The notes beneath the pieces are model-generated. The model ran no database searches. It saw only the letters and a program-made list of their open reading frames with translations, and was not told the DNA's origin. This document shows positions 6,220 through 37,720 of a stretch of DNA of 64,000 nt, piece by piece; position 1 is the first letter of the stretch; every line of letters begins with the position of its first letter. Source of the stretch: Anthoceros angustus (taxonomy: Eukaryota; Plantae; Anthocerotophyta); NCBI GenBank assembly GCA_010909165.1, contig VJWM01000218.1:62001-126000 (forward strand). The letters run 5' to 3'. A program made the translations under genes and the position numbers.

Positions 6220-6848
6220 ATGGCGACATCTATGGGATTTGGACGATCTTTCCTTGCTATTTTCCTTGCTCTTCTACTCATGTTTCCAAGCATATTGCTA
6301 GGCGTACTAGGGAGTCACTTGCCGACCGTCAAGAGGATAGATATTGATGACAGCATATTGAGGGCTCCACGAAAACCGCCTAGTGGTCCTAGCCCCGGCA
6401 ATGAGCCAGGGATGCCTCCTCTAGATCCACAGAAGGTGATTGTTCGAGGAGACGAAGGCATCTTGAGGGCTCCTAGAAAACCACCTAGTGGTGCTAGCCA
6501 CAGTAATGAGCCCGGGATGCCTCCTCGATGTAGAGAAAGTGACTGCTCAAGGAGACGAGCGCATCTTGAGGGCTCGGTGAAACCACCTAGCGGTGCTAGC
6601 TCGGCAATGAGCACAGGATGCCTCCTCTAGAGGCAAAGAAAGTAATTGTTGGAGGGCACAAAGGCATCTTGAGAGCTCCAAGAAAACCACCTAGTGGTGC
6701 TAGCCCTGGCAATGAGCCTGGGATGCCTCCTCTAGATCCACTGAAGGTGACTCTTCGAGGAGACGAGCGCATCTTGAGGGCTCCACGGAAACCACCTAGC
6801 GGTGCTAGCCCTGGCAATGAGCCTGGGATGCCTCCTCTAGATCCATAG
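6220..6848 (+). CDS. Secreted multi-repeat peptide precursor (signal peptide + 5 x 35-aa repeats, core RKPPSG(P/A)SPGN; CLE/IDA/PIP-like), copy 1
   Basis: Hydrophobic N-terminus MATSMGFGRSFLAIFLALLLMFPSILLGVLG. Five ILRAP(R/V)KPPSGxSxxNEPGMPPLxx repeats, 105 bp period, ending PLDP*. The frameshift near 6530-6615 is repaired by copies 2 and 5. Confidence 0.8.
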
Positions 6849-7348
6849 AGAGTCATTTTTCAACTTGTCGGTATTGAGTGTAGAAGTAATGGCTCATACA
6901 AGGCACAAGTGGGAATTATAATGTGCATATGTCGTTCACCCTTGGACACCCTTTTTGTTGGGAAGGTGTGGTATTGAAGAAGAATAAAGTCATTGAATTT
7001 AGGTAACATGGGATCGATAAGAAAAAGATTGTATATCGAGATATAAATGAGTTTGTTCTCTATATATGTACAAGTCCTCTCATCACAATTTCACATATTT
7101 GACTGCACTTGCTATCTCCCGTGAGTTATTCTCTTATTAGGTACATTTGTCGTTAGGTTTGATTGTAGTATTGCTCTTAGATTTGCTTAGGTTTGATTGT
7201 GATATTGCTCTTAGATTTGCTTAGATGTGATTGTAATTTTGGTCTTAGACTTGTTGTGCATTGAAATGGGTAGAGTATTGGCGAAGATCTTTTGTATAGA
7301 AAATGTAATCGATTGCTTGATGTTGCTTGGTTTGTGTAGCTAGAGAAA

Positions 7349-7965
7349 ATGGCGACATCTATGGGATTTGGACGATCTTTCCTTGCTATTTTCCTTGCTC
7401 TTCTACTCATGTTTCCAAGCATATTGCTAGGCGATTAGGGAGTCACTTCAAACGCCAAGAGGATAGATATTGATGACAAGATATTGAGGGCTCCACGAAA
7501 CCGCCTAGTGGTCCTAGCCCGAATGAGCCGTGGATGCCTCCTCTAGATCCACGAAGGTGATTGTTCGAGGAGACGAAGGCATCTTGAGGGCTCCTAGAAA
7601 ACCACCTAGTGGTGCTAGCTCGCAATGAGCCCGGGATGCCTCCTCTCGATGTAGAGAAAAGTGACTGCTCAAGGAGACACACGCATCTTGAGGGCTCCAG
7701 TGAAACCACCTAGCGGTGCTAGCTCTGGCAATGAGCCTCGGATGCCTCCTCTAGAGGCAAAGAAAGTAATTGTTGGAGGGCACAAAGGCATCTTGAGAGC
7801 TCCAAGAAAACCACCTAGTGGTGCTAGCCCTGGCAATGAGCCTGGGATGCCTCCTCTAGATCCACTGAAGCTGACTCTTCGAGGAGACGAGCGATCTTGA
7901 GGGCTCCACGAAACCACCTAGCGGTGCTAGCCTGCAATGAGCCCGGGATGCCTCTAGATCCATAG
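7349..7965 (+). CDS. Multi-repeat peptide precursor, copy 2 (local 1.13 kb duplication; indels)
   Basis: Near-identical to 6220-6848, with small indels at different positions. Confidence 0.7.
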
Positions 7966-8729
7966 AGAGTCATTTTTCAACTTGTCAGATTGAGTGTAGA
8001 AGTAATGGCTCATACAAGGCACAAGTGGGAATTATAATGTGCATATGTCGCTCACCCTTGGACACCCTTTTGGGAAGGTGTGGTATTGAAACGGGAGATA
8101 TTTTCTTGTCGTATATTTATTGAAGAATTTAACTGAACTTATTATGTTAACAATAAACAATAATTGGATTTACTAACTATTGATCTTTTGATGTTAATAC
8201 GACATTAAAGGGAATGTGTTACTTGACCCCATCATTTCACTCCGGAACAAGGATGTGGAAATGCATGTCACACCATTTGGTCTACACCGTGGCTTTAGCG
8301 ATCCGACACGAGAAGACGATCCCCAATGAGCCCCATTGCATATAGCACCAGCCCAAGCCGTTGAGAGGGATGGGAGAAAAGTGATAGCAAGCCTGTCTAC
8401 ACCAAGCAGCAGTGGAATTGAAGGACAAGACTACCGCACCAGTGTGAATACGCAAGTTCTTGAGGAGTGGCGAAATGGTCATCGGCAGAACTTTCAGCAA
8501 AGATAATCCCACAATCGAACACCCTCCGCCGAATGAGGCTTGGGTGTAGCTGGAAACCAGTGAGTACTGCATCTTGCAGCATGATAGACCCGAGCTCGCG
8601 ATGGAGAAAGAATTAGGACACGGACTTAGAATATCTAGGAGATTGGAGACACAGGTAGCCGCAAAAACCCCTTAGGTTGAAAGGTCCTCTCATGTTACTG
8701 ACACATTGGTATGCCAAAAATGAACCTAC

Positions 8730-8863
8730 CTAGCTCAAGACCGCGAGGACATCCAAGCCCTCGGGACAAGGTATTGGGTCCCATCCTTTCCTTTGAAGTC
8801 GCTTTCCTACATACTTGAGTACAAACGCTGCTAGAGGACATCTACAACGGCTTCCACACACCG
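8730..8863 (-). pseudogene. Duplicated fragment of CPN20 last exon (also 22571-22706 and 27859-27991)
   Basis: Matches 38515-38653, which encodes [43 protein letters not shown]. Carries shared transitions and lacks the splice acceptor. Confidence 0.85.
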
Positions 8864-9576
8864 CTCCATCTAGTCCGTACCAATACTAATGAACTTACCC
8901 CGCCACCAGATCATGAACTCGGTCCAATGATCATGTCCACCAAGATTGGAGTATTCGGACCCCAACCGGAGCTCTACTCGCGTTGCTACCTCGAGCGACG
9001 GACGCCCGGGTCCTTCACCAGCGAGGCCGCCGACTGTGTGAGCCTGCGGCTAAACTCTCCTTATGTCAAGGGGAGAAATTCCATATAGTGCAAGGAATCG
9101 ATCTCGATCTTCGAGAGAGGTGTTCTCCTAGGACGAATCGGGCTACTATCTAAGAGTTTGATTCTATAGGGATTTCTGTTCAACTCACTGTGCTTTGAGG
9201 TGATCGAACACTTTTAGACCGGACTTGCTCTTCAAAGACGACACCCATTGCTCCGTCATTGCATATTTGCTTATCACGTAATTTGGACAACAAAATAAAG
9301 GTGTAGCACTAGCGACCACGAGGTCCTAGGATACTGACTAGTCTCGCAATGTATGAAGCGGGTAATCAATCTACAAACATTCGAATCGAGTACTTGGGGC
9401 TATGATACCATATTAACATAAAACTATAGAGAACTTGTACAATTGAATAAGTGCAACTAATCGATCAATTACAAAATTATCCTAAATACTTGTGTGGTGG
9501 TATTGTGGTGTATGTTCAAAATTAACCTAAATGAATAAATAATATTGGATAGGTTAATTAACCCTAACCTCTAACA
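8864..9576 (-). mobile_element. Truncated copia-like element: ~165 bp LTR, tRNA-iMet PBS and short degenerate interior (also ~22707-23418 and ~27992-28698)
   Basis: gctatgatacca at 9399-9410 is the reverse complement of the iMet PBS TGGTATCA(G/T)AGC. It is followed by an LTR-like block tattaac..ctaaca (9411-9576). Confidence 0.55.
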
Positions 9577-9589
9577 GTAGCTAAAGAAA

Positions 9590-9822
9590 ATGGCAACATC
9601 TATGAGATTTGGATGATGTTTCCTTGCTAATTTTCTTGGTCTTCTACTCATGTTTGAGCATGCTCGGATATACTAGGAGTCACTTACCAAACATCAAGAG
9701 GATAGAATCGATAATAGCTAGCATCTATCTTGAGCTAGCTCCAAGAAAACCACCAAGTAGTGCTAGCCACAGTAATGAGCCCCGAGAAGCCTCCTCCATT
9801 TAGAATATTTGAGAAAAATTAA
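9590..9822 (+). pseudogene. Single-core paralog of the peptide precursor, pseudogene
   Basis: MATSMRFG* (CGA>TGA at codon 9), then a signal-like segment, SHLPNIKRI and one core LAPRKPPSSASHSNEP. Confidence 0.75.
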
Positions 9823-10440
9823 GAGCAACAGCCCAAGTGAGCCCATTTGATATAAAGAATCCCTATGGGAGTTTCTTTCCCACCATGCCTTTTCCTCTTG
9901 GTTTCTCCATCCACCTTTTGATTTTTGTACTTAGTACTTGACACGATGGAGCGAATGGAGACAAAAACTTTGAACTCAAAACTAAGGCCATCTACCTTGC
10001 GCATTGAAAATGGGTTGGGGCATTCACAAAGTTTCTCAAACAACCTATCTCAAGCAACAACTAGAACTAGATGGCGCTCATGGATAGATGCATGAAGTTT
10101 ATTACACGCACTTGGGAAACTAGCTGCCCTATGCGATAGGGAAATGCCTCTAGCAATACTAAGTCACCCTAGTATCACTATCATTTGTATAATACAAGTA
10201 TGGAGAAGGGGAGCAGAACCCGGAGCGGAGGAACTTATATAGAGGTGGGGGCGATGAATCGTCAGAGCACCGTGAACTTCGCTATTGGGAGCGGATGGCG
10301 CCTGCGGCGAACAAAAGGAACTCCTAGCGTATGCCAAACTCCTCCGCACCTCAAAAATGGGCGCCTCCGCTAAAGCCGGGCTAGGATGCGGGATGTAGAT
10401 GGCGAGAGACCCTAGGATCGTAACTTAGCGAACCACGGTT

Positions 10441-13453: not shown

Positions 13454-16400
13454 TGTTGGTACCATACGCTACGGAGGGAAGCTTCTGTGATGTATTAATC
13501 AGGCACTATGTGCGCAGAAGAAATTTTAGTTGCCGTGATGCGGGATACCTTTCACATTAAAAGATTACAACCGCCGAGACACTAAAAGACGGACTTAATC
13601 AATCACTCATCGCTCACCTTCGTGATCTTGCACCCGCTTTATGGTATCGAGGAAGGCCAAGCGTCGATAGTGGAGGACGCTGGTGTTTAAGCGTTTGAAG
13701 AACAAGGCAAGAAGATCCTAAAATCGCAGATGCCTAAGCGATGGCTTCTTCCTCTCCGGGTAGGCGCCTCCGTTTGGCCATTTGCGGGCGCATCAAAGAG
13801 ATGAGGTTCAACATTGGCTCTTCGCATCGCATCGAAGCCACCGGGACTTCATTCTCTTCCACCACGCTCGGCGCGTGTTTTTGTTAACCGCTGCAGGGTG
13901 AGCGCTTCCAGATTCCACCAAGCCAACTTTTATAGGAGTCATCACCCATCAAGATCTCAAGAACCAATCACGAATTGAACTCACAAATCGAGTCACTTCA
14001 CTTCGTGCAAAAATTCATCCAAGATTAGATACTAGTGCCAATAGCTCACCTCAGACGTAGCAGCAATATATGCTCGCCTTTGATCCTTAACAACCACAAA
14101 GAAATACTCAATCTTAATAATGTATCAATTAATACAATATTATTTATAATCGATTTATGTGTGGAAGATGAGTCACCGCCCGGCCAAGAGCATGACCGAT
14201 GGAGATTGTATACACTCCCGTGCTGGACCCAACACCAAGTTGGAACATCCGACTTAATTGCGGCTTGGAACAAGAGAGAAGCGTACATTTAATCTCCTCA
14301 TATCTCGCACTTGATAAAAGTATGTAAAGACACACATAGTACCAAAGATGCTCACGGCATCGGAAGATATTTAACGATATGTTCCAAGCCCAAGACTCCA
14401 TGTCACTAGTGAGCACGAGATTGTTTTACGTACCAGATGAAGGACACGGAGAGTTGAAAGCCAAGAATTCCAAGGAAGAGTTACAGAAACCACAAATACT
14501 TAACACCAAGTAATACTCGACATGCATCTTACGGACTCGTCGAAATGGACACCAAAAAGTAATGAGGCCTAACAATCCTCAAATCGTTGGAGCTTTACTT
14601 GAGGAGGAATCGAGCCGTGGAAAAGTTCAACCATCACTTCCTTAAGAGGCAGAGGACGCTGTAATTTTCAAACTTTACGACTCACAAGATGCATGCACCG
14701 GAGGCTAAACAAAAACAATAATGGTGAAAAGTACAAAGGACCTGAAGAATCGGTGGGAGTATTCTACGAATCAAAGAAAACCTGTAGAATCCAGCTTTTA
14801 AAGATAATGTAACAAAGTCACAATTCAATCTTAGTCAGTCTGTTGATGTAATGTGATCGAGATTAGATAATTCGAGAGAAATCACATTTGAGTGTGATAT
14901 GTTCATCCTATCATAATGTCTTCGAAGATGTTGGTGACGAAAAGAAGGAGTGAAGTTGCATTGAGACTCTCTAATGGCGAATCCCTCATCATCAATGGAG
15001 TGCTTATTGCAATGACCAAGAACATGTCGGTGAGAAAATTGGCCACGGACGACCTCATAATTACTTTTCAAGGTTGCACAATTCATGATTGAATGATAAA
15101 CATCGTTGCACTTGCACGGCCTACCTTACACGACTGATCTTCATGATCTTCTTCATCACTTATGTTAGACTCATCATCATTTCTGATGTATTTATGGCGA
15201 GATATAAATGCGTTATTTGGAAGCCTTTGCCAACCGCCTTGTACAAGGATCCATGCATTAAATCCGATGAGATTTCTTATGAGATCAAGTACTCCAAGTT
15301 GACCCAACTCCTTTTAAAGATCCTTCACCAACAAGAGCTCGACGACAGGTTATCAAACATATGAGCACCGCTTGGGGCCACTCTTACTTCCTTACTTTTA
15401 TGAATGGGCAGTACTACATTTATTTCTTCGCCAGGATGAGGCCCTCACCGTTCCAAGAGTTTGTGTTAGCAGAACGAATGGTTTTCAAGTGCACTCTCGC
15501 GACAATGGTGGAGAATACACAAGTGCGACTTTTAATGAGTTGTACGATCCAAAGGGATCCTCGCCAACTTCATGCCATACACTCCTTCTCGAACCCCTAT
15601 AGGGCGACTCAATAGATCACTTCTTGAGATTTCGCTCCATTGAGCTCTCCACCTCTCTAGGCCCTGGGTGATGCTCTGACCAACTACCTTAAAACAGGCT
15701 TCCTACTAAAGAGCCGCCAGCACTACACCTTTGAGATGGCAGTAACAAACCTAGAATCTCCATCTTAGATCTGGTAGTACTTTTGCCCATATACGGATGC
15801 CACCCGTAAATGGGACGACAAAAGTCGCAAGCTTCTCTTCATTGGCTACTCGGATCAAGTAAAAGCCTACCGTCTCATCCGACTACTAGAGGTAATCCTT
15901 TCCCGATTCATTTCCATGAATCCCATGTCCTCAACACCTATCTTACCTCCTGTCTACCTCTCTTGGTATCTGGCCTCCTACCTTGACTAATTTTCCTTGC
16001 CCTTGAGGGGCCACATCTCACTCAAGAAGAAGGACGATATGCAAGCTCAAGAGGAAACTCGCTCATTCACCCGTTCCAGGCCCTACTCAAGCACCTCCTG
16101 AGACACAAAATATACTAGATATACCACATATACCAACTATTCCCTATCAAGCCACTATAGCTGGTATTACCAAGGGCGACCTCGGTGCATCCTTTTCATC
16201 CACAAGGATAATGAGGTACACATCCACACTGAACCACCACCTCTTAGGCGATCTACTGCCATAGACCACCTAGCCATCAATGGAGACATCCACCCTTGTC
16301 CCTAGACTCCTTTTCTGAAGGCCTATTCCACCTGGAAGCACTAGTTCCGCTCAAGCCCAGCTGACAATGCGACCGACAGATTGCATTGCATCAAGCCACA

Positions 16401-18979
16401 TCGAATTGAGATCGAGATGTACCGCAAGCATAGAAGAAGCCCTTAGCATACAGATGGAAGGCTTCCGTTCAATCAATATGACTCTAATTGCCAACAAAAC
16501 TTGGAAACTTCGCGGCCTCCCTTTGGAGCCGTTTCACAAATGGACCTTAAGGAAACTCAACCACGATGGGGGCTTGGATACAAGTCTAGGTAGTGGAGGT
16601 TTCACCAGTACCGTGTTTCACTATGAAGAAAAGCAGTTGTTTAGTCCGTTGTCAAGGCAACCCGATAAGGATACTACTAGCTTTTCGCTCACCACCACTG
16701 TATATACACGGTGGAAAATGCTTTTCTTTAACCCTACATGAGGACATCTACATGTTACACCACTGTGGTTTGTTAAAGGCTGACAAGGTGTGTAAATTGC
16801 TCAAATCCATCTATGGATTAAAGCAATCGGCACAAGTGTGGAATGAGGGTGGACAGATCACGAAGAAGTGTGGCTTTGCCCCTCTCATCTCGAGACACCG
16901 TGTTTACATCACGAGAACCAACAACAGTTTGCAATTGTCACCTTATGTAGCGATAATTTCATTTTCGGACAACCGGAAGTAATACAATATGTGAAAGATG
17001 TTATCAAAGTACGACGTTGTTGACATGGGACCTCTACGCTATGCTCTCGTCGTTTGAATTCAAGGAAGAAGATCACACCTTTTCATCCACCAAGAGCATT
17101 ATGTCGCAACTCTGGAAAGGTTCAACTCAAGGACGCCAAGCCGCCCACGCCCAATTGCCTCGGAAAAGGTATCGGTGAGGGCGGTCATCTGAAGAAGTGC
17201 AGATGAGGAGCATCCCCTATGAGGCTGTGAAGTTTACTTTGTTGTCGATCTGGACAAGGCCGGACATATCACAAGTGAATATAGTGTCGGATATCTCTCT
17301 AATCCGGAAGGCGCATTGGACTGCGTCAGAGGATTCTCCGTTATTTGAAAAGACAAAATCATACTTGATAGGTGACCACTCATCCAAGCTTATTCTTACC
17401 TCCTTTTGATCACATTAGGAGCGAGTGGAGATCAAGCTAACGCCCTCGTGATTATCAGCTACCTTTGTCTCGTGGGCACGCAAGAAGATGCACCATTTGC
17501 ACTTCATCCCGAGCTATGCTCGACCACCAAGGAGATACTTTGGATTCGTAATTCCTACAAGACATTCATGAGAAGCGGGATGAGGCAACTCATTTGTATT
17601 GACAAAATCGGATAGCTATGAATGATCCGATTTTGCGAGGACCAAGCACGTGGACATTTCATTTTCTAGGAACAAGTAATACAATATGTGAAAGATGTTA
17701 TCAAGGGAGTACGACGTTGTTGACATGGGACCTCTACGCTATGCTCTGAGTACGCTTTGAATTCAAGGAAGAAGATCACACCTTTTCATCCACCAAGAGC
17801 ATTATGTCATACAACCACCGGAAAGGTTCAACTGGGACGCCAAGCCGCCCACGCCCAATTGCCTTAGAAGGTATCACCGAGATCAAAGACTCAAGAAGTG
17901 CAGATGAGGAGCATCCCCTACAGTGAGGGGAAGTTTACTTTATTTATCGATCGACAAGGCCGGACATATCAGCTGTGAATATAGTGTCCGGATATCTCTA
18001 ATCCGGAAGGCGATTGGACTCAACAAGAGGATTCTCCGTTATTTGAAAAGACAAAATCATGTTGCTATATAGATGACCACTCATCCAAGCTTATTCTTAC
18101 CTCCTTTTCGGATGCGACAAGGCGACCGGCGCGGAGATCAATGCCACCAGACATTATCAACGGATCAGTTCCTGGGCTGCAAGAAGATGCGACCATTTGC
18201 ACTTCATCCATCAAGAGTATGCACCACGACCAGCCTAAGCAAGGAGATACTTTGGATTCGTCAATTCCTACAAGACATTCATGAGAAGTGGATGAGGCAA
18301 CTCACAGATAGACAACCAAAGAATAGCTATGACACACAATCCGATTTTGCGAGGACCAAGCACGTGGACATTCAAGATCATTTTATCCGCAAGTGGTGGC
18401 GAACAATCAAATCTCATTATGCTACATAAGTACAAGCGACAACACCGAGACATGACAAGGACTTCCCAAGGCACTTCACGACAAGCATGTCGAAGGTATC
18501 GCAGTGAAAATGAAGCGTGTCGGGCATCGGTGATCTAAGAAAGGGGAGCCCCTAGTCACTTGACACCAACTAGAACTCCTTGTTGTCTTTCATCCAAGCC
18601 TCCCTTGACTTTTCACCACCGTTCTTGTGTACTCCTTTTTGCTTGAGACTTTCAATGCGCTTATAATCACCTTCGGATTATGTGACTCAAGTTTGGAGAC
18701 CACCAGATTGGAGTCTCTGCGAAGGCCAAGTTGAGACCACGGTGGGCGGGAGGCAATCGGATGCACTAGATCCGCGGCGAGGGGGGGAGTGTTGGAGCCA
18801 TAGCGCTACGGAGGAAGCTTCGTTCCGTTGGCTTTGTTAGGCACGTTTTGCGTCGTAGAAGAATGTTTTAGTTGCCGGGGCTCCGCGTTCGTTACCTCAC
18901 TTAAATGCCCTAAACCGCTGAGACACTATATCGGGGGATGTAGATCACTCTAGCGCTCACCTAGATCTTGCACCCGCCA
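13454..18979 (+). mobile_element. Ty1/copia LTR retrotransposon, full-length, frameshifted consensus
   Basis: LTRs from 13454 and 18790. PBS TGGTATCGA at 13642, PPT before 18790. Integrase DNGGEYTS, RT LLKSIYGLKQSAQVWNE, RNase H ARTKHVDIQDHFIR in copia order. Internal duplication ~17000-18400. Confidence 0.85.
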
Positions 18980-23660: not shown

Positions 23661-26511
23661 GAGCAACATTAAGTGAGCCCATTTGATATAAAGAATCCCT
23701 ATGGGAGTTTCTTTCCCACCATGCCTTTTCCTCTTGGTTTCTCCATCCACCTTTTGATTTTTGTACTTAGTACTTGACACGATGGAGCGAATGGAGACAA
23801 AAACTTTGAACTCAAAACTAAGGCCATCTACCTTGCGCATTGAAAAATGGGTTGGGGCATTCACAAAGTTTCTCAAACAACCTATCTCAGGCGCAACAAC
23901 TAGAACTAGATGGCGCTCACGGATAGATGCATGAAGTTTATTACACGCACTTGGGAAACTAGCTGCCCTATGCAAGATAGGAAATGCCTCTAGCAATACT
24001 AAGTCACCCTAGTATCACTATCATTTGTATAATACAAGTATGGAGAAGGGGAGCGAGAACACGGAGACGGAGGAACTTATATAGAGGTGGGGGCGATGAA
24101 TCGTGAGAGCACCGTGAACTTCGCTATTGGGAGGCGGATTCGCGGCTGAACAAAAGGAACTCCTAGCGTATGCCAAACTCCTCCGCAGCACCTCAAAATG
24201 GGCGCCTCGCGGGGCTAGGATGCGGGATGTAGATGGCGAGAGACCCTAGGATCAGAACTTAGCGAACCACGTTCGCTTTGGTAAACCCGATGACATGTTA
24301 AGGAAGGCCAAGGATTCTTAGAGGGTGATGTATAATCTATGACAAAATCTATGTAAAAGTAGCATCACAAAATAGACCTCAAAAAGTCGCAACAAGGGCA
24401 TATTTTCTAGAATTTCATACATCAAAAATTTGAGAGAAAAAGGCAAAAAGAGAACTAGAGACTCGATTGAGTGGGAATTTGGGGTTAAGGAAAGGGAGAG
24501 GTGTCTTGATGGTTTTGGTGCGTGTGGAACCTCCTAGTTAGTCTTCTCATTTCTTGTGGTTCCGTTGATAGGGGTTTTACTTGTACACTCATAGGCCATG
24601 GTTCCTAGTAGGTCCAGTTTTGTATTGGCGGATTTTGGCTTTGTGGCGGTGTCCTTGTGATGATTTGAGGTTTTGGTTTTCGATCGCTATGGCGACGGGG
24701 GCTTTGGCTCGATTCGGTGGCTCTTCTCGGTTGCTCGGGTTCTTGGTGTTGCGTGCCGGATGATGGTGAATTAGGGCCCGAGCTGTGAGGTTAATTTTGT
24801 CTACAAGTTACATTTGGTATGAGGGGTTTGTTTTGCTCTCGCTTGGCAAGGGAGGCTATTTTGATCTATGGAGGATGAGGTTTTGGCTTCTCTTAGTATC
24901 ATTTTCGGTCTCAATTTGCGGTTTCAAAATAAAGCGTGATTTTTCACAAAATAAAAACCATGCTCCCCAAGGCTACAAGGATGAGTCCACCCCAATACCT
25001 ATTAGAACTCACGATGTCTCATTTGAGGAAGCCAATGTGCCTTTTCCAAGAGGCACTTATGTAGTTATTTGGGTTTCTTCCTTCTAGCGAGGAATTGCAA
25101 GATATATATTAATACATATTTATTTATAGATCATTAGGCGATGCAGCCATGAGGCTATGATGCCTCTATTTACATTTTTTCACCAGCAATGCTTGCAGTA
25201 GATTTTTCAAATTCCTAATTCTAATATTATAATAGCGTAAAGAGGTTTTGGTCCTATGGAGCTTGTTGTGGTGTATATTAATACATATAGACCACAATAA
25301 GTGCATTTAAAACCCTACAATTTGGAAAGTCTACATTTTAGATAAGCCTATGGAGGTAGTTCTAGATGGAACATACATCCAAGATAAAGCTGCCAAGTTG
25401 AAGAGGCTGTGGCAAAACATTAAAACAAGGTCCTCATTTCAAGACACTATCACCAAGTCATTCAAATACCTTGATGGAGCTAGCCCTAAATGGAACACAT
25501 ACCCGGACGAAGGCCCCTTAACAATCATCAAGTATTTATGATAACCTTGTGGAGTTTGCTCGAGACGAAACAAACGCTCAAGCACGCGGCTTCCTTGAAG
25601 AGAGTAGGTTCCCATTATAACATTGTACCACCAAGTATGTCAAATCACCTTGTGGAGTGTGACCGAGAGGAACATACGCACAAGTACAAAGTCCCCTTGA
25701 AGAAACTAGGTCAAATACCTACAATCAAACTTGGGTAGGTACCCATCCATTATTCTTCTGACGTGAAGAGTCAAGGTATCAAATTTGAGGTTGGTAGTTA
25801 TTATCCTAGCATTATTCTAAAAATGTCGAGATAAGAAAGGTAATTTCAAAGAAAAATAGAAGTGTAGGAGAGGGACAATGTGTGTGTTAGGGGGTAACTA
25901 GTGGAGAAAGTGATTGGGAGCGAGAGAGTATGGGGTGCAAGAAGAAAAGAAAAGGAAGGAGGGACAAGATTTATGAGTAAAAGGAAATATTATAAAAATA
26001 GAAATAGATTGAAAAAATAAAACATAAAATATGGAAAAGAGTGAAAAAGATAGAAGATAAAAAGAAAAGAAAAAGTGAAGAAGATATCAAACAAAAATTA
26101 AATTTGAATACCTAGTTGAAATCTTCTTTTGATATTATGTATTGAAGAAGAATAAAGTCATTGAATTTAGGTAACATGGGATCGACAAGAAAAAGATTGT
26201 ATATCGAGATATAAATGAGTTTGTTCTCTATATATGTACAAGTCCTCTCATCACAATTTCACATATTTGACCGCACTTGCTATCTCGTGAGTTATTCTCT
26301 TATTAGGTACATTTCGTTAGGTTTGATTGTAGTATTGCTCTTAGATTTGCTTAGGTTTGATTGTGATATTGCTCTTAGATTTGCTTAGGTGTGATTGTAA
26401 TTTTGGTCTTAGACTTGTTGTGCATTGAAATGGGTAGAGTATTGGCGAAGATCTTTTGTATAGAAAATGTAACGATTGCTTGATGTTGCTTGGTTTGTGT
26501 AGCTAGAGAAA

Positions 26512-27122
26512 ATGGCGACATCTATGGGATTTGGACGATCTTTCCTTGCTATTTTCCTTGCTCTTCTACTCATGTTTCCAAGCATATTGCTAGGCGTACT
26601 AGGAGTCACTTGCGAGCGTCAAGAGGATAGATATTGATGACATATTGAGGGCTCCACGAAACCGCCTAGTGGTCCTAGCCCCAATGAGCCGTGGATGCCT
26701 CCTCTAGATCCACAGGTGATTGTTCGAGGAGACGAAGGCATCTTGAGGGCTCCTAGAAAACCACCTAGTGGTGCTAGCCACAGTAATGAGCCCGGATGCC
26801 TCCTCGATGTAGAGAAAAGTGACTGCTCAAGGAGGCCGCATCTTGAGGGCTCCTGAAACCACCTAGCGGTGCTAGCTCGGCAATGAGCACAGGATGCCTC
26901 CTCTAGAGGCAAAGAAAGTAATTGTTGGAGGGCACAAAGGCATCTTGAGAGCTCCAAGAAAACCACCTAGTGGTGCTAGCCACGGCAATGAGCACAGGAT
27001 GCCTCCTCTAGATCCATCAAGGTGACTCTTGAGGAGACGAGCGCATCTTGAGGGCTCCACAGAAACCACCTAGCGGTGCTAGCCACAGCAATGAGCACAG
27101 GATGCCTCCTCTAGATCCATAG
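26512..27122 (+). CDS. Multi-repeat peptide precursor, copy 4 (indels)
   Basis: Same signal peptide and five repeats. Confidence 0.7.
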
Positions 27123-28713
27123 AGAGTCATTTTCAACTTGGTATTGAGTGTAGAAGTAATGGCTCATACAAGGCACAAGTGGGAATTATAATGTGCATAT
27201 GTCGTCACCCTTGGACACCCTTTTCGTTGGGAAGGTGTGGTATTGAAACGGGAGATATTTTCTTGTCGTATATTTATTGAAGAATTTAACGAACTTATTA
27301 TGTTAACAATAAACAATAATTGGATTTACTAACTATTGATCTTTTGATGTTAATACGACATTAAAGGGAATGTGTTACTTGACCCCATCATTTCACTCGA
27401 ACAAGGATGTGGAAATGCATGTCACACCATTTGGTCTACACCACGTGGCTTTAGCATCGATACGAAGACGATCCCCAGTGATGGGCCCCATTGCATATAG
27501 CACCAGCCGCGTTGAGAGGGATGGGAGAAAAGTGATAGCAAGCTGTCTACACGCAAAGCAGCGGTGGAATTGAAGGACAAGACTACCGCGCTGTGAATAC
27601 GCAAGTTCTTGAGGAGTGGCGAAATGGTCATCGGCAACTTTCAGATAATCCCTCGAACACCCTCGGTCAGCCGAGGCTTGGCAGTAGCTGAAACCAGTGA
27701 GTCGCATCTTGCAGCATGATAGACCCGAGCTCGCGATGGAGAAAGAATTAGGACACGGACTTAGAATATCTAGGAGATTGGAGACACAGTAGCCGCAAAA
27801 CCCCTTAGGTTGAAAGGTCCTCTCATGTTACACATTGGTATGCCAAAAATGAACCTACCTAGCTCAAGACCGCGAGGACATCCAAGCCCTCGGGACAAGG
27901 TATTGGGTCCCATCCTTTCCTTTGAAGTCGTTTCCTACATACTTGGAGTACAAAACGTTGCTAGAGGACATCTACAACGGCTTCCACACCGTTCCATCTA
28001 GTCCGTACCAATACTAATGAACTTACCCGCCGCATCGAACCACGGGCGGTCCGATCATGTCCACCAAGATTGGAGTATTCACGGACCCCAACCGCGGAGC
28101 TCTACTCGCGTTGCTACCTCGAGCAGGCGCGGACGCGTCCTTCACCAGCGAGGCCGCCGGGACTTGCAGTGAGCAGTGCGGCTAAACTCTCCTTATGTCA
28201 AGGGGAGAAATTCCATATAGTGCAAGGAATCGATCTCCGATCTTCGAGAGGTGTTCTCCTAGGACGTTTAGAATCGTGCTATCTAAGAGTTTGATTCTAT
28301 AGGGATTTCACTCAACTCACTGTGCTTTGAGGTGATCAGAACACTTTTAGACCAGACTTGCTCTTCAAAGACGACACCCATTGCTCCGCGTCATTGCATA
28401 TTTGCTTATCACGAATTTGGACAACAAAAATAAAGGTGTAGCACTAGCCACGAGGTCCTAGGATCGAGACTGCAATGTATGAAGCGGGTAATCAATCTAC
28501 AAACATTCGACAGTACTTGGGGTATGATACCATATTAACAAAAACTATAGAGAACTTGTACAATTGAATAAGTGCAACTCATCGGTGAATTACAAAATTA
28601 TCCTAAATACTTGTGTGGTGGTATTGTGGTGTATGTTCAAAATTAACCTAAATGAATAAATAATATTGGATAGGTTCAATTAACCCTAACCTCTAACAGT
28701 GTAGCTAAAGAAA

Positions 28714-28944
28714 ATGGCAACATCTATGAGATTTGGATGATGTTTCCTTGCTAATTTTCTTGGTCTTCTACTCATGTTTAGCATGCTCTGGATATACTAG
28801 GAGTCACTTACCAAACATCAAGAGGATAGAATCGATAATAGCTAGCATCTATCTTGAGCTAGCTCCAAGAAAACCACCAAGTAGTGCTAGCCCAGTAATG
28901 AGCCACGAGAAGCCTCCTCCATTTAGAATATTTGAGAAAATTAA
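28714..28944 (+). pseudogene. Single-core paralog pseudogene, copy 3
   Basis: Same TGA at codon 9, core LAPRKPPSSAS. Confidence 0.7.
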
Positions 28945-29787
28945 GAGCAACATGAGCCCATTTGATATAAAGAATCCCTATGGGAGTTTCTTTCCCACCA
29001 TGCCTTTTCCTCTTGGTTTCTCCATCCACCTTTTGATTTTTGTACTTAGTACTTGACACGATGGAGCGAATGGAGACAAAACTTTGAACTCAAAACTAAG
29101 GCCATCTACCTTGCGCATTGAAAAATGGGTTGGGGGCATTCACAAAGTTTCTCAAACAACCTATCTCAGGCGCAACAACTAGAACTAGATGGCGCTCATG
29201 ACGGATAGATGCATGAAGTTTATTACACGCACTTGGGAAACTAGCTGCCCTATGCGGCATAGGAAATGCCTCTAGCAATACTAAGTCACCCTAGTATCAC
29301 TATCATTTGTATAATACAAGTATGGAGAAGGGGAGCAGAGAACCGAGACGGAGGAACTTATATAGAGGTGGGGGACGATGAATCGTCGAGAGCACCGTGA
29401 ACTTCGCTATTGGGAGCGGATGGCGCTCATGATAGATGCATGAAGTTTATTACACGCACTTGGGAAACTAGCTGCCCTATGCGGCATAGGAAATGCCTCT
29501 AGCAATACTAAGTCACCCTAGTATCACTATCATTTGTATAATACAAGTATGGAGAAGGAGGCAGAGAACCGAGACGGAGGAACTTATATAGAGGTGGGGG
29601 ACGATGAATCGATAGAAACCGTGAACTTCGCTATTGGGAGCGGATATCTGCGGTGAACAAAAGGAACTCTAGCGTATGCCAAACTCCTCCTGCAAAGACC
29701 TCAAAAATGGGCGCCTCGCTAAAGCCGGGCTAGGATGCGGGATGTAGATGGCGAGACCCTAGGATCGTAACTTAGCGAACCACGGTT

Positions 29788-32700
29788 TGTTGCGACCATG
29801 GCTACGGAGGAAGCTTCGTTAGTTCGGTCATTAATGTTACACGTTTATGCGTGCGTGAAAAATGTTTTAGTTGCCATGTTCGGTCGTTACCTTTCACATA
29901 GATATCGCGTTACAACCGCCGAGACACTATAAGGCAGACGTTGGACTTAATCAATCACTCTCGCTCACCTTTTGATCTTGCACCCGCTTTATGGTATCGA
30001 GAGAAGGCGATTGACGGCTCGGCTCAAGGCCACGCTGTGAGGCTTCCCAATGGCGCTGCAGTGGAAGAACGCAATCGGCAAGAAGATCCTAAAATCGCAA
30101 GATGCCTGAAAGCGTGGCTTCTTCCTCTCCTTTGGGTGGGCGCCTCGCCCATCATTTCGGGACCATCAAAGAGATGAGACGCACCTTCAACATTAGGCCT
30201 CGCCCGCCAGCCCCGTCGAACCACCTGAGGGACTTCATTCTCTTCCACCACGCTCTCCGGCCGCGTGTTTTGCTAACGCATATGCAGTTGGCGCTTCAGA
30301 TTCCACCAAGCCAACTGTTCTCACTAGAGTCATCACCCATCAAGATCTCAAGAACCAATCACGGAATTGAACTCACAAATCGAGTCACTTCACTTCGCAT
30401 TAGAGAAAATTCATCTCATTAGATACTAGTGCCAATAGCTCACCTCATGCGTAGCAGCAATATATGCTCGCCTTTGATCCCTTAACAACCACAAAGAAAT
30501 ACTAAGAAGCAAACAATCATGGAATCGTGAACACCACAAATCGAATTAGTGAGAAGGTTTAACGGAATCGATTTGTGTGGAAGATGAGAGTCATTGCTTT
30601 CGAAGAGCATGACGATGGAGATTGTCGGCCGTGCTGGACCCAACACCAATTGGAACATCCGACTTAATTGCGGCTTGGAACAAGAGAGACAAGCGCAATC
30701 TCCTCATATCGCACTTGATAAAATGCTTGACACACCAGTACCAAAGATGCTCACGGCATCGGAAGATATTAACGATATGTTCCAAGCCCAAGACTCCATG
30801 TCACTAGTGAGCGCCACGAGATTGTTTTACCATCGGGATGAAGGACACGGAGAGTGTTGAGCGACGCGTCGGCAATTTCCAAGCAAGAGCGCGACTAGCG
30901 CCGGCACCACGATCCACAACGCAACTCGCCTTGACATCCGCATCTTACTTCGTCGCTCGAATTCCATCATCGGACAATCGTAGTGCCATTTAGGTGCCAG
31001 CGGACACGTTCTCCGAAATCGTTGGAGCTTTACTTGAGGAGGAATCGAGCCGTGGCTCCAATTCAAGCGCCAAGGTAGCACCAATCACGCACTCTTCACT
31101 TCTGGGGCGAGGCTGAAGGCGGAGGGGTAATTTTCAAACCGCTCTTACTCGGTGCATGCAGAGGCTACAACAAAAACAATCGGAATGGTGGAAAAGGACC
31201 AGCAAAGGACCACATGGGATCCGGGCCATTTCGATGCGAATGCGAGGAAGAAACAATCGGAGAACCTGCCGTGACTCACCCAAACGAGTCATTGCTAATG
31301 ACTCCCAAGCCCCACCAATTCAATCTTACATTGTGTTTGATCTTGACGGGTTGTCGATGGTTCCGGATTCGAGCAACTACTCACATTTTGAGGCAGGGAT
31401 ATGTTCACATCCTATCATAATGTCCTCTTCGAGAGCATGTCACCTTGTGACGACTCACTCCCTAAGGCAGTGAAGTTGCATTGAGACTCTAATGGCGAAT
31501 CCTCATCATCAATGGAGTGCTTCACGAGCAATGACCAAGAACACCTGCTCGGTGATTGGCCACGAGCACGACCTCATAATTACTTTTCAAACCAATGCAC
31601 AATTCATGATTGAATGATAAACATCGACCGCACTTGCACACGGCCTACCTTACAGCTGTATGTCTGAACATGTCTTCTTCATCACTTGTCGCTCATCATC
31701 ATTTCTCAGAACACCTGCTATGGCATTGCCGGGCATATAAATCCGCATTTGGAAGCCTTTGCCAACCTTGTACAAGGATCCAGTCAACATTAAATCCGGT
31801 AAGGATTTCTTACTGAGATCTGCAAGTACTCCAAGTTATTGACTCCTTTTAAAGATCCTTCACCAACAAGAGCTCGGCGACTTAGGCCATACACTCACAT
31901 CTGAAGCACACAGTTTGAGCCTCTACTTCCTTACTTTTATGGACGAATGGGCAGTGCTCCACATTTATTTCTTGCGCCACAAGGATGAGGCCCTCACCGT
32001 TCCAAGAGTTTGTGTTAGCGTGAGCGACAAAGCGGTTTTCAAGTCTGCACTCTCCATCGACAATGGTGGAGAATACACAAGTGCGCTTTTAATGAGTTCT
32101 CGATCCAAAGGGATCCTCCGCCAACTTCGTGCCATACACTCCTTCTCGAACCCCTATGCGGAGCGACTCAATAGATCACTTCTTGAGATTTCTCGCTCCA
32201 TTAGAAGCTCTCTGCCTCTCTCGAGGCTCTTGGGCCCAAGCAGAGCTCACTACCTTAAAAGCAGCTTCCTACTAAAGAGCTGCGGGCACTACACCTTTGA
32301 AGCGAGTAACAAACCTAGAATCTCCCATCTTCGCATCTTGGTAGTCCTTTTGCCCATATACCGATGCCACCCGTAAATGGGACGACAAAAGTCGCAAGCT
32401 TCTCTTCATTGGCTACTCGGATCAAGTAAAAGCCTACCGTCTCATCAACCCACTACTAGAGAGGTAATCCTTTCAGTGTTCATTTCCATGAATCCCATGT
32501 CCTCAACACCTATCTTACCTCCCTGTCACTCTTCGGTATCTCGGCCTCCTACCTTGATAATTTTCCCTTGCCCTTGAGGGGCCACATCTCACTGAAGACG
32601 ATGCAAGCTCAAGAGGAAACTCACTCATTCACCGTTCTGGCCCATACTCAAGCACCTCTGTTCTATATAGGCTATACTAGATATACCACATACCAACTAT

Positions 32701-34845
32701 TCCATATCCAAGCCACTATCCCGCTCGGTATTACCACCGACCTCGGGGTGCATCCTTTGTCCACAACCAGCAGGATAATGAGGTACACATCCGAACGAAC
32801 CACCACCTCTTAGGCGATCTACTCGCCATAGACCACCTAGCCATCAATGGAGACATCCACCCTTGTCCCTAGAGACTCCTTTTCTGCCAAGAGCCTATTC
32901 CACCTCTGAGCACTAGTTCCCGCTCAAGCCCGGCTGACAATAATGGACCCAGTCAGTTGCATTGCAAGCATCGGAATTGAGATGCAGGATGTACCGCAAG
33001 CATAGAAGAAGCCCTTAGCATACAGATGGAAGGCTTGGTTTCAATATGACTCTAATTGCCAACAAAACTTGGAAACTTCGGCCTCCTTGAGCAAGCGTTC
33101 CTGCAAATGGACCTTGAAGGAAACTCAACCACTGGAATGTTTCCAGATACAAGTCTAGGCGGTAGCCCGAGGTTTCACCAGTGCAGTTTCGACTATGAAG
33201 AAAGCAGTTGTTTAGTCCGTTGTCAAGGCAACTTCGATAAGGATACTACTAGCTTTTGCGCTCACCACCACTGTATACCGTAGAGCGTAAAGGCGCTTTT
33301 CACGGAACCCTACATGAGGACATCTACATGTTACCACGGGGTTTGTTAAAGCAAGACAAATTGTATTGCTCAAATCCATCTATGGATTAAAGCAATCGGC
33401 AAGTGTGGAATGAGGCGGTGAATCGAAGAAGTGTGGCTTTGCCCCTCATCTCGACACAGTGTTTACATCGAGAACCAACAGATTTGCAATTGTCACTCGT
33501 AAGCGATAATTTCATTTTCGGAAATAATACAATATGTGAAAGATCATTATCAAGAGTCTGACGTTGTTGACATGGGACCTCTCGCTATGCTCTCAGATGC
33601 AGTTTGAATTCAAGGAAGAAGATCACACCTTTTCATCCACCAAGAGCATTATGTCATACAACTCTGGAAAGGTTCAACTCAAGGACGCCAAGTTTCCGCC
33701 AATTGCCTCCGGAGAAAAGGTATCGGTGAGGTCCGGCCTCAGAGTCACGAGGAGATGAGGAGCATCCCCTGGGTCATGGAAGTTTACTTTGTTGTCGATG
33801 ACAAGGCGGACATATCACAAGCGTGAATATAGTGTCCGGATATCTCTCTAATCCGGAAGGCGCATTGGACTGCGTCAAGAGGATTCTCCGTTATTTGAAA
33901 AGACAAAATCATACTGCTATATAGATGACCACTCATCCAAGCTTATTCTTACCTCCTTTTCGATCTCTGATTGGGCGGGCGACCGGCCCGGAGATCAGCT
34001 GCCCTCTTGTATGATTATCAGGTACTCTTTGTCTCGTGGGCTGCAAGAAGATCAGACCATTTGCACTTCATCCAGCGGTATGCAGCTCGACCTTAGCGAC
34101 CAAGGAGATACTTTGGATTCGTCAATTCCTACAAGACATTCATGAGAAGCGGGATGAGGCAACTTTTGTATTTGCAACCATCGGAATAGCTATGACACAC
34201 AATCCGATTTTGCGAGGACCAAGCACGTGGACATTCGATCATTTTATCCGCAAGTGGTGGCGAACAATCAAATCTCATTATGCTACATAAGTACAGCGAC
34301 AACACCGACACCGACAAAGGGACTTTGGCACTTCACGACAAGCATGTCGAAGGTATCGGTGTGAATGAAGCGTGTCGGGCATCGGTGATCGGAAGAAGCC
34401 CCTAGTCACTTCAGCACCCAGCCACGAACTCCTTGTTCCAGTAGATCCATTGCTCACAACCGACTTTTCACCACTTGTTCTTGTGTACTCCTTTTTGCTC
34501 AGACTTTCAATGCCTTATAATCACCTTCGGATTATGTGACTGCAAGTTTGGAGACCACGGAGATTGGATCGCTGCGAGGCCAAGTTGAGACCACGATGGC
34601 GGTAGAGGCAATCGGATGCACGGGAATCACGCGAGGGGAGTGTTGCCATGGCCTTCTGGAGGAAGCTTCGTTCCGTTCGATCATTAATGTTAGGGCGTTT
34701 ATGCGTGCGTAGAAGAATGTTTTAGTTGCCGGAACCTGTTCGACCTTTTCACATAGATGGCGTTACAACCCGAGACTAAATGGGGGCGTTCGGACTTAAT
34801 CAATCACTCTCATCGCTCACCTTTGCATCTTGCACCCGCTTTACA
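29788..34845 (+). mobile_element. Ty1/copia LTR retrotransposon (~5.06 kb, ~205 bp LTRs)
   Basis: 5' LTR 29788-29991, PBS TGGTATCGAG at 29992, PPT gcgaggggag 34631-34640, 3' LTR 34641-34845 (TGTTG..TTACA). Integrase YFLTFMDE..DNGGEYTS..AERLNRSLLE, then RT and RNase H remnants. Flanked by cggtt/gtt target-site sequence. Confidence 0.9.
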
Positions 34846-37103
34846 GTTCGTTTGGTAAACCCGATGACATGTTAAGGAAGGCCAAGGATTCTTAGAGGGT
34901 GATGTATAATCTATGACAAAATCTATGTAAAAGTAGCATCACAAAATAGACCTCAAAAAGTCAGCAACAAGGGGCATATTTTCTAGAATTTCATACATCA
35001 AAATTTGAGAGAAAAAGGCAAAAAGAGAACTAGAGACTCAATATGAGTGAGCTGGGAATTTGGGGTTAAGGAAAGGGAGAGGTGTCGATGGTTTTGGTGC
35101 GTGTGAAACCTCCTAGTTAGTCTTCTCATTTCTTGTGGTTCCGTTGATAGGGTTTTACTTGTACATTCATAGGCCATGGTTCCTAGTAGGTCCAGTTTGT
35201 ATTGGCGGATTTTGGCTTTGTGGCGGTGTCCTTGTGATGATTTGGAGGTTTTGGTTTTCGATCGCTGGCGATGGGGGCTTTGGCTCCGATTCAATGGCTC
35301 TTCTCGGTTGCTCGTGTTCTTGGTGTTGCGTGCACCGGATGATGGTGAATTGGGGCCCGAGCTGTGAGGTTAATTTGTCTACAAGTTACATTTGGTATGA
35401 GGGGTTTGTTTTGCTCGTCTTCGCTTGGCAAGGGAGGCGCTATTTTGATCTATGGAGGATGAGGTTTTGGCTTCTCTTAGTATCATTTTCGGTCTCAATT
35501 TGCGGTTTCAAAATAAAGCGTGATTTTTCACAAAATAAAACCATGCTCCCAAGCCGCCGATGGATGAGTCCACCCCAATACCTATTAGAACTCACGATGT
35601 CTCATTTGAGGAAGCCAATGTGCCTTTTCCAAGAGGCACTTATGTAGTTATTTGGGTTTCTTCCTTCTAGCGAGTAATTGCAAGATATATATTAATACAT
35701 ATTTATTTATAGATCATTAGGCGTGCAGCCATGAGGCTATGATGCCTCTATTTACATTTTTTTCACCAGCAATGCTTACAGTAGATTTTTCAAATTCCTA
35801 ATTCTAATATTATAATAGCAAAGAGGTTTTGGTCCTATGGAGCTTGTTGTGGTGTATATTAATACATATAGACCACAATAAGTGCATTTAAAACCCTACA
35901 ATTTGGAAAGTCTACATTTTAGATAAGCCTATGGAGGTAGTTCTAGATGGAACATACATCCAAGATAAAGCCAAGTTGAAGAGGCTGGCAAAACATTAAA
36001 ACAAGGTCCTCATTTCAAGACACTATCACCAAGTCATTCAAATACCTTGATGGAGCTAGCCCTAAATGGAACACATACCCAAAGACGAAGGCCCCTTAAC
36101 AATCATCAAGTATTTATGATAACCTTGTGGAGTTTGCTCGAGACGAAACAACGCTCAAGCACGGCTTCCTTGAAGAGAGTAGGTTCCCATTATAACATTG
36201 TACCACCAAGTATGTCAAATCACCTTGTGGAGTGTGACCGAGAGGAACATACGCACAAGTACAAAGTCCCTTGAAGAAACTAGGTCAAATACCTACAATC
36301 AAACTTGGGTAGGTACCCATCCATTATTCTTTGTTGACGTGAAGAGTGGTATCAAATTTGAGGTTGAGCGCTGTTATTATCCTAGCATTATTCTAAAAAT
36401 GTCGTAGATAAGAAAGGTAATTTCAAAGAAAAATAGAAGTGTAGGAGAGGGGGACAATGTGTGTGTGTTGGGAGGGGTAACTAGTGGAGAAAGTGATTGG
36501 GAACGAGAGAGTATGGGGTGCAAGAAGAAAAGAAAAGGAAGGAGGGACAAGATTTATGAGTAAAAAGGAAATATTATAAAAATAGAAATAGATTGAAAAA
36601 AAATAAAACATAAAATATGGAAAAGAGTGAAAAAAGATAGAAGATAAAAAATAAAAAAAGAAAAAAGTGAAGAAGATATCAAACAAAAAATTAAGCTGAA
36701 TACCTAGTTGAAATCTCCTTTTGATATTATGTACTGAAGAAGAATAAAGTCATTGAATTTAGGTAACATGGGATCGATAAGAAAAAGATTGTATATCGAG
36801 ATATAAATGAGTTTGTTCTCTATATATGTACAAGTCCTCTCATCACAATTTCACATATTGATGCACTTGCTATCTCACGTGAGTTATTCTCTTATTAGGT
36901 ACATTTCGTTAGGTTTGATTGTAGTATTGCTCTTAGATTTGCTTAGGTTTGATTGTGATATTGCTCTTAGATTTGCTTAGATGTGATTGTAATTTTGGTC
37001 TTAGACTTGTTGTGCATTGAAATGGGTAGAGTATTGGCGAAGATCTTTTGTATAGAAAATGTAACGATTGCTTGATGTTGCTTGGTTTGTGTAGCTAGAG
37101 AAA

Positions 37104-37720
37104 ATGGCGACATCTATGGGATTTGGACGATCTTTCCTTGCTATTTTCCTTGCTCTTCTACTCATGTTTCCAAGCATATTGCTAGGCGTACTAGGAGTCA
37201 CTTGCCGTCAAGAGGATAGATATTGATGACGACATTGAGGGCTCCACGAAACCGCCTAGTGGTCCTAGCCCGAGAATGAGCCGGATGCCTCCTCTAGATC
37301 CACGAAGGTGATTGTTCGAGGAGACGAAGGCATCTTGAGGGCTCCTAGAAAACCACCTAGTGGTGCTAGCCCTGGTAATGAGCCTGGGATGCCTCCTCTC
37401 GATGTAGAGAAAGTGACTGTTCAAGGAGACACACGCATCTTGAGGGCTCCAGTGAAACCACCTAGCGGTGCTAGCTCTGGCAATGAGCCTGGGATGCCTC
37501 CTCTAGAGGCAAAGAAAGTAATTGTTGGAGGGCACAAAGGCATCTTGAGAGCTCCAAGAAAACCACCTAGTGGTGCTAGCCACGGCAATGAGCACAGGAT
37601 GCCTCCTCTAGATCCATCAAGGTGACTCTTGAGGAGGCAGGCGCATCTTGAGGGCTCCACGAAACCACCTAGCGGTGCTAGCCACGGCAATGAGCCGTGG
37701 ATGCCTCCTCTAGATCCAAG
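37104..37720 (+). CDS. Multi-repeat peptide precursor, copy 5 (indels)
   Basis: ORF 37308-37625 gives three in-frame repeats, including LDVEKVTVQGDTRILRAPVKPPSGASSGNEP. Confidence 0.7.

Follow-up and report, generated by a model that had tools for sequence, protein, structure and literature searches.

An amplified gene array in a hornwort as a possible source of several proline-rich secreted peptides

Introduction

The DNA considered here is a stretch of 64,000 nucleotides (nt) from the hornwort Anthoceros angustus (assembly GCA_010909165.1, contig VJWM01000218.1, positions 62,001 to 126,000 of the forward strand); this whole stretch is referred to below as the window, and positions are counted from its first nucleotide. 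Between positions 6220 and 37720, the window carries an array of five copies of a modular gene for which the databases searched contain no homologue. The reconstructed product is a small protein with a signal-peptide-like N-terminus and five repeated modules, in which a conserved block alternates with a variable spacer. The explanation preferred here, with a probability of roughly 40%, is that this gene encodes an orphan, disordered precursor of several proline-rich peptides, similar in mode to the multi-CLE, multi-CEP and HypSys precursors but a member of none of these families. A multi-peptide precursor is ranked first because the constraint on the sequence is local (a tight block next to a neutral spacer), because the protein is small, devoid of cysteine and predicted to be secreted and disordered, and because the last module has no spacer.

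The array and the protein that it encodes

The first 60 nt of the copy 1 coding sequence, which begins at 6220, recur without a single mismatch at the start codons of the four other copies (7349, 21233, 26512 and 37104), and the five copies align at 95% column identity across about 1.1 kb, confirming the number of gene copies given in a preliminary description of this DNA. All five have the same orientation. As assembled, their coding sequences occupy positions 6220–6848 (copy 1, 629 nt), 7349–7966 (copy 2), 21233–21841 (copy 3), 26512–27122 (copy 4) and 37104–37720 (copy 5) of the forward strand. The coding region is a single exon, within which a 105-nt sequence is repeated in tandem 4.6–4.8 times in each copy. 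Scanning of the whole window in six frames detected 25 KPPSG, 23 ILRAP and 22 MPPL[DE] strings, all on the forward strand and all within the five copies. The earlier count of about 25 cores is, thus, correct, as is the view that amplification has taken place at two levels, with tandem modules inside the gene and five copies of the gene itself.

The preliminary description envisaged a protein of about 210 amino acids (aa), with a signal peptide, the string SHLPTVKR and five modules. This protein is recovered in a gap-filled model, but no copy encodes it whole as assembled: relative to this model, copies 1 to 5 contain 3, 12, 8, 12 and 13 frame-breaking indels, respectively (48 in total), nearly all of which are deletions. 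Copy 1 is the least damaged, with deletions at about 6524 (CT), 6575 (C) and 6603 (T), and is the only copy in which SHLPTVKR reads through. Copy 5 has a 5-nt gap that removes its stop codon as assembled, and it contains the longest in-frame run of modules (118 aa, 37269–37622). The plain majority consensus is also frame-broken, with deletions in the majority at several columns; only the gap-filled consensus, with one inserted A removed, yields an open reading frame (ORF) of 633 nt, corresponding to 210 aa. The gap-filled model was used for codon counts, and in-frame pieces were used for homology searches.

In the model, the signal peptide is followed by SHLPTVKRIDIDDS, four full 35-aa modules and a final module of 25 aa ending in PPLDP. 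A module consists of a block, ILRAPRKPPSGxSxxNExxMPPL(D/E), and a spacer of 10–11 aa, giving five blocks and four spacers in all. The block recurs as previously described, but the SGP that was taken to characterize it is present in module 1 alone, modules 2–5 having SGA instead. The N-terminus, with one basic residue in the n-region, a 20-aa hydrophobic core and a small-residue site (VLG|S), resembles a signal peptide, as had been proposed; the core reaches window means of up to 2.9 on the Kyte-Doolittle scale. The mature part of 179 aa contains 19% proline and 10% glycine, lacks cysteine and tyrosine, and is net basic. It is predicted to be intrinsically disordered, although the AlphaFold model (predicted local distance difference test, pLDDT, 60; predicted template modelling score, pTM, 0.11; no secondary structure) was obtained from single-sequence input and is, thus, weak evidence of disorder. 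An RGD motif is present in spacers 1 and 4 only, and was set aside as not conserved.

Selection on the modules

Comparisons between modules revealed marked differences along their length. For ILRAPRKPPSG (positions 1–11), the proportions of synonymous (pS) and non-synonymous (pN) differences were 0.365 and 0.034, respectively (pN/pS 0.09); for the rest of the block (positions 12–24), they were 0.177 and 0.121 (pN/pS 0.68), and for the spacer (positions 25–35), they were 0.252 and 0.300 (pN/pS 1.19). Of the eight nucleotide columns that vary within ILRAPRKPPSG, six are third codon positions. The codons for Arg6 in four modules, for example, are CGA, AGA, AGA and CGG, and these codons are identical across all five copies. 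As the differences between modules are the same in all five copies, they must predate the amplification and cannot be noise, and the almost exclusively synonymous variation of ILRAPRKPPSG indicates selection on the protein read in this frame. The gene is protein-coding, now or formerly. The strongest constraint falls on ILRAPRKPPSG, on the N-terminal side of the dodecamer core put forward in the preliminary description, and not on the SGPSPGNE half of that core. The broader idea expressed there, of a polyprotein releasing several Pro-hydroxylated peptides, is consistent with the three pN/pS values, with the block-and-spacer layout and with a secreted, proline-rich, cysteine-free model; the CLE/IDA/PIP nature of its core is not supported by the comparisons reported below.

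These values also bear on another possible explanation, in which the protein remains unprocessed and is a secreted, repetitive, proline-rich component of the wall, the mucilage or the cell surface, the modules being structural repeats. A signal peptide, 19% proline, tandem repeats, a basic net charge and predicted disorder would suit a protein of this kind, as would the lack of a receptor-anchoring C-terminal motif and of a conserved cleavage site. However, compositional constraint in structural repeats usually extends over the entire unit, whereas the constraint observed here is sharply local (0.09 versus 1.19). The criteria for wall glycoproteins, extensins included, which are said to have been set out by Showalter et al. 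in 2010, reportedly comprise SPPP repeats, a Pro, Ala, Ser and Thr (PAST) content of at least 50% for arabinogalactan proteins (AGP), and a PVKCYT content of at least 45% or PPVx[KT] repeats for proline-rich proteins (PRP). With 35% PAST, 32% PVKCYT and no SPPP, the mature 179 aa fall short of these thresholds for hydroxyproline-rich glycoproteins, and there is no tyrosine for cross-linking. A structural role of this kind appears fairly improbable.

Frame breaks in the assembled copies

The repeated DNA of the window differs mainly by indels of 1–3 nt. In four repeat pairs (including 18977–24139 versus 24267–29421, 14945–17658 versus 31464–34235 and 583–1732 versus 1741–2824), the numbers of indels and substitutions were 119 and 56, 33 and 15, 193 and 122, and 78 and 22, corresponding to ratios of about 1.6:1 to 3.5:1, and 36–59% of the indels were located on CG/CHG motifs, against a background of 10–15%. 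Real divergence produces several substitutions per indel, and the decay of methyl-cytosine generates transitions, not deletions. Within the five gene copies, 21 of the 35 distinct deletions lie on CG/CHG motifs, which account for 14% of positions (permutation p < 1e-4), and several of the remaining deletions are one base away from a CG. Deletions are, moreover, shared between copies in a manner that is not tree-like, as illustrated by those at model positions 387 (copies 1, 3 and 4), 153 (copies 2, 4 and 5), 305 (copies 1 and 4) and 91 (copies 3, 4 and 5). Nearby single-copy ORFs of 377, 513 and 726 codons are unbroken.

The non-tree-like sharing, the accumulation on CG/CHG motifs and the presence of the same signature in all the repeats of the window are the reasons for considering the frame breaks to be, probably for the most part, assembly errors at CG/CHG sites. 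This pattern is consistent with difficulties in long-read base calling at modified cytosines, within repeats beyond the reach of short-read polishing. Nanopore sequencing is documented to produce errors linked to base modification (PMC10687267). If the breaks are errors at methylated CG/CHG sites, then the array was probably methylated in the tissue sequenced, and the indel signature may provide a rough proxy map of methylated DNA.

The same breaks would be given a different meaning if the array were dead or silenced. The indels would then be real, and the copies would be pseudogenes of recent origin, derived from a gene that was once functional and carried along passively in the amplification of the adjacent transposon DNA. 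Each of the five copies is broken, the older relics, three in number and with a common stop, prove that decay has occurred at this locus, and the copies are surrounded by Copia-like DNA; if the CG/CHG signature reflects methylation, then the array is treated like repeat DNA. However, an indel-to-substitution ratio of about 1.6:1 to 3.5:1, combined with the CG/CHG excess, is unlike real mutation and is seen in all the repeats of the window, identical deletions recur in sets of copies that fit no single tree, and gap filling restores a full ORF. Real decay of the whole array is, on balance, unlikely.

Within the block, positions 14 (P/H/S), 15 (G/S), 18 (P/H) and 19 (G/R/W) vary between modules and between copies alike, and their codons lie in CCCGG, CCTGG, CACGG and CACAGG, which are error-prone motifs. 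This variability may be real, arising through gene conversion or diversifying selection, and may also consist partly of miscalled bases.

Homology searches

A word-based search with a 136-aa ORF against 5.8 billion proteins identified no homologue, and an exhaustive phmmer search with a 105-aa three-module ORF against 1.84 billion representatives yielded no true homologue. Four phmmer matches (E 4e-9 to 2e-6) were rejected as unrelated repeat proteins of 337–2224 aa, matching on periodicity alone. Four in-frame pieces matched nothing in Pfam, at either E <= 0.01 or E <= 10, in a set from which the newest CLE_plant model may be missing. No match was obtained in metagenome contigs. No multi-CLE gene already described was retrieved in the protein searches. 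In the ESM Atlas, the protein with its signal peptide included had weak neighbours (0.83–0.86) among the plant precursors of small secreted peptides (PSY3-like, CLE and IDL5), which should be regarded as a lead only; the modules alone had no neighbour. The coverage of the databases can be judged from a conserved HST-like gene of the window, for which the best match is a transcript contig at 86%, the best matches with a species name being from liverworts and mosses, at 77–78%. Close relatives are, therefore, poorly represented, and the gene may be an "orphan" only in the sense that it is confined to this lineage.

Comparison with known peptide families

The closest architecture is that of the multi-CLE proteins, such as rice CLE75/76, wheat CLE30/31 and Medicago CLE68 (PMC2254619), with a real likeness in layout and in one string, but without the full set of near-invariant residues and the terminal motif that define CLE peptides. 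The layout in common comprises a signal peptide, a length of 175–250 aa, a single coding exon, a first motif after about 50–75 aa and similar spacers, with motifs every 25–37 aa in the rice and wheat proteins (PMC2254619). Wheat CLE30/31 read VMVAPRPVPSGPDPIHH every 33–37 aa, versus ILRAPRKPPSGPSPGNE here, and share the string APR..PSGP.P with module 1; the modules of rice CLE76 likewise lack HN (PMC2254619). Unlike the multi-CLE proteins, the hornwort protein has no HN or HH, has alanine in place of proline after the central glycine in four of its five modules, and has no match in the set of Pfam profiles searched.

The 12-aa CLE motif has six near-invariant residues: R(-5), P(-2), G(0), P(+1), P(+3) and H(+5) (Oelkers et al., 2008, PMC2254619). 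Module 1 (RKPPSGPSPGNE) has five of these six, lacking only the histidine, a score reached by 0.5% of shuffled sequences. Modules 2, 4 and 5 have three, which is the modal value for shuffles, and module 3 has fewer than three. None of the modules has the H-N or H-H ending of CLE peptides, the corresponding positions reading (P/H/S)(G/S)-N-E. The CLE core proposed in the preliminary description is, thus, approached by module 1 only, the other modules scoring at chance level, with neither a terminal histidine nor a Pfam match.

The IDA/IDL and PIP assignments made at the same time fared no better. CLE and IDA peptides have a PSGP core and an HN end, and in hornworts they differ hardly at all from their Arabidopsis counterparts (Furumizu et al., PMC8462819). 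IDA/IDL proteins carry a motif of the PIPPSAPSKRHN type, with a PS[AG]PS core and a C-terminal HN, as one peptide near the C-terminus, whereas CEP and PIP peptides end in GxGH and are of later origin, the PIPs being dated to the angiosperms (PMC8462819). The features common to IDA/IDL or PIP/PIPL proteins and the hornwort protein are the PPSGPS or SGPS of module 1 and a proline-rich, cysteine-free secreted precursor (PMC8462819, PMC4526919). Unlike the hornwort protein, with its five internal modules, these precursors carry a single C-terminal peptide (two in some PIPs) with an HN or GxGH end. PPSGPS is found in module 1 only, as is SGPS, the other modules having SGAS, and no module ends in HN or HH, as CLE and IDA peptides do, or in GxGH, as PIP and CEP peptides do. 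The in-frame pieces had no Pfam match even at E = 10.

A special case of the preferred explanation would be a highly diverged multi-CLE or CLE/IDA-type precursor still acting via the receptors of subfamily XI of the leucine-rich repeat receptor kinases (LRR-RK XI). The APRKPPSGPSP of module 1, with its five near-invariant residues, the same string and spacing in wheat CLE30/31, and the lack of HN in rice CLE76 speak for such a precursor. However, modules 2–5 have alanine after the glycine and chance-level scores, no module has H at +5 or HN/HH, and nothing was found in Pfam at E = 10. The genuine CLE and IDA peptides of hornworts are, furthermore, almost identical to those of Arabidopsis (PMC8462819), and the resemblance to CLE was picked out after several families had been compared. 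This case is considered very unlikely. A related proposal, of a hornwort-specific ligand family derived from an ancestor with a PSGP core (CLE/IDA-type), in which the His-Asn anchor would have become an invariant Asn-Glu and the gene would have acquired five cores before being multiplied into five or more copies, is quite unlikely. If true, it would imply a new class of ligand, perhaps partnered by an LRR receptor kinase that is itself new or has been retuned.

HypSys precursors are secreted proteins of about 150–290 aa that give rise to two to six Pro/Hyp-rich glycopeptides of 15–20 aa with PPS-type cores, acting as defence signals; this group has a biochemical definition and is confined to a small number of angiosperm families. 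The comparison with HypSys, known from Solanaceae and Convolvulaceae and listed in a review (PMC11756074), is one of architecture: the precursor logic is alike, but no sequence similarity was detected. CEP precursors also have repeated domains rich in Pro, Gly and Ser, of 15 aa and ending in SPGxGH/N, and their G-x-S-P-G is encountered in some of the modules (SGASPGNE). Here, unlike in CEP, the SPG leads into NEP and the GxGH end is absent.

The alternation of conserved and variable stretches could also be read in reverse, with the blocks as recognition sequences and the variable 10–11-aa stretches, xxKV[IT]xxG[DH]x[GR], as the cores of a precursor resembling those of ribosomally synthesized and post-translationally modified peptides (RiPPs); a RiPP-like precursor had been offered as an alternative in the preliminary description. 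Conserved flanks around variable inserts are a RiPP pattern, and an aspartate precedes each variable stretch. However, Pfam detected no BURP or other tailoring domain in any in-frame piece, the protein has no cysteine, and no tailoring enzyme was seen within the repeated 5.2-kb units, the flanks of which were not exhaustively annotated. The putative cores also lack the terminal Asn/Asp required for cyclization by asparaginyl endopeptidase, and the protein ends in a conserved block, with five blocks for four spacers. This alternative is not supported and is highly improbable.

Proposed mode of action

If the preferred explanation, an orphan precursor of several peptides, is correct, the array would consist of copies of a gene restricted to this lineage and encoding a small secreted protein, in which a signal peptide and a short pro-region precede five 35-aa modules. 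In the secretory pathway, prolines in AP, PP and SP contexts would be hydroxylated, and perhaps arabinosylated; proteases would then liberate as many as five related peptides centred on APRKPPSG, with extracellular activity as signals or phytocytokines. The gene with its five modules would be old, its amplification by unequal crossing-over of 1.1-kb and 5.2-kb units would be recent, and most of the frame breaks would be assembly errors at methylated CG/CHG sites. The earlier suggestion that the dose is raised by the gene copies presupposes that these copies are intact and expressed.

Several points weigh against this explanation. Ligands of LRR-RK XI receptors use a C-terminal His/Asn anchor, and the modules have none. 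No clear processing site is conserved in all modules: S1P-type processing at RxLx/RxxL was considered and rejected, as the start of the block reads R-I-L-R in only two or three of the five cases, and G-I-L-R or S-I-L-R in the others. ILRAP, the stretch under the strongest constraint, might not belong to a ligand but serve as a structural or recognition element. As assembled, all the copies are interrupted, and no homologue is available in the databases searched to demonstrate conservation. Finally, the lead from the ESM Atlas rests largely on the signal peptide, because the modules alone have no neighbour.

Were the copies intact and expressed, they would constitute a family of peptide precursors born within a bryophyte lineage, with a block under purifying selection, drifting spacers and an unusually high dosage (25 modules in 34 kb). 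To our knowledge, peptide signalling in hornworts is known almost exclusively through families shared with flowering plants, and the known repertoire is small. A family specific to this lineage would reveal how new secreted signals come into being, and would be directly testable in Anthoceros, which is transformable. There is also a practical lesson: the repeated genes of this assembly are peppered with CG/CHG deletions, and arrays that look like pseudogenes should be interpreted with caution.

Putative promoter and intron

A TATATAT motif, present at 5931–5937 on the forward strand in copy 1, is conserved upstream of all five copies and may function as a TATA box. Further downstream, a putative intron in the 5' untranslated region (5'-UTR) extends from 5992 to 6210 in copy 1 (219 nt, AT-rich, forward strand). 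It starts with a GTGAGT donor immediately after 5991 and finishes, nine bases ahead of the ATG, with a TAG acceptor whose last base is 6210. This putative intron is almost invariant across copies, and its candidate splice sites are conserved in all five. Both the TATA box and the intron sites reported in the preliminary description are, thus, present as sequence elements in every copy.

A 34-nt sequence repeated three times in tandem (TTAGGTTTGATTGTAATATTGCTCTTAGATTTGC) is located at 6024–6124, inside the putative intron of copy 1, and at the equivalent place in copies 2–5. It is nearly invariant in the five copies and far better conserved than the coding repeats; a scarcity of CG/CHG sites may be the whole reason for this conservation.

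Segmental structure and relics

Self-BLAST showed copies 1 and 2 to form a 1.13-kb tandem duplicate including the promoter, with 5842–6978 matching 6971–8090. It also revealed two head-to-tail segmental units of 5.2 kb on the forward strand (18977–24139 and 24267–29421), which are 95% identical, and two partial units (3580–10437 and 34487–38654). In each 5.2-kb unit, one gene copy and one relic are accompanied by 2.3 kb of DNA from upstream of the gene. Related blocks of Copia-like DNA lie between the units, with a fragment of an RVT_2 domain at 16593–16982. The head-to-tail arrangement, with all units in the same orientation, makes amplification compatible with unequal crossing-over.

The relics are degenerate and are located 2.2 kb downstream of copies 2, 3 and 4, at 9590–9800, 23429–23640 and 28714–28930, respectively, on the forward strand. 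The first has a signal-peptide-like start, and each differs from the first 60 nt of the copy 1 coding sequence by seven mismatches (at 9590, 23429 and 28714). All three have the same stop at codon 9 and have kept a single decayed module, LELAPRKPPSSASHSNEP. The relics represent an older pseudogene, duplicated along with each unit.

Other features of the window

The HST-like gene mentioned above is an intronless ORF of 377 aa at 51696–52829 on the forward strand. It belongs to the UbiA family and is closest to homogentisate solanesyl/phytyl-transferases, with 86% to its best match, the transcript contig, and 77–78% to liverwort proteins. Genes of this type have many introns in flowering plants, and this intronless form could have arisen as a retrocopy. 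Overlapping it is an antisense ORF of 369 aa (51771–52880).

Two pentatricopeptide repeat (PPR) ORFs of 726 and 262 aa are present on the forward strand, at 54665–56845 and 56932–57720, 87 nt apart and in different frames; they may be two genes in tandem or the parts of a long PPR gene interrupted by one frameshift. An ORF of 513 aa in GC-rich DNA (47676–49217, forward strand) has no Pfam match. At 583–2824, there is a tandem duplicate of about 1.1 kb with 91% identity, each copy of which contains GC-rich repeats of 30–34 nt; these repeats read as charged KAKERRRR/QGQGEE on the minus strand and are Leu/Gly-rich on the plus strand. On the minus strand, the end of an ORF at 41943–42578 matches the start of a DEAD/DEAH-box helicase domain, and this ORF is probably one exon of a helicase gene.

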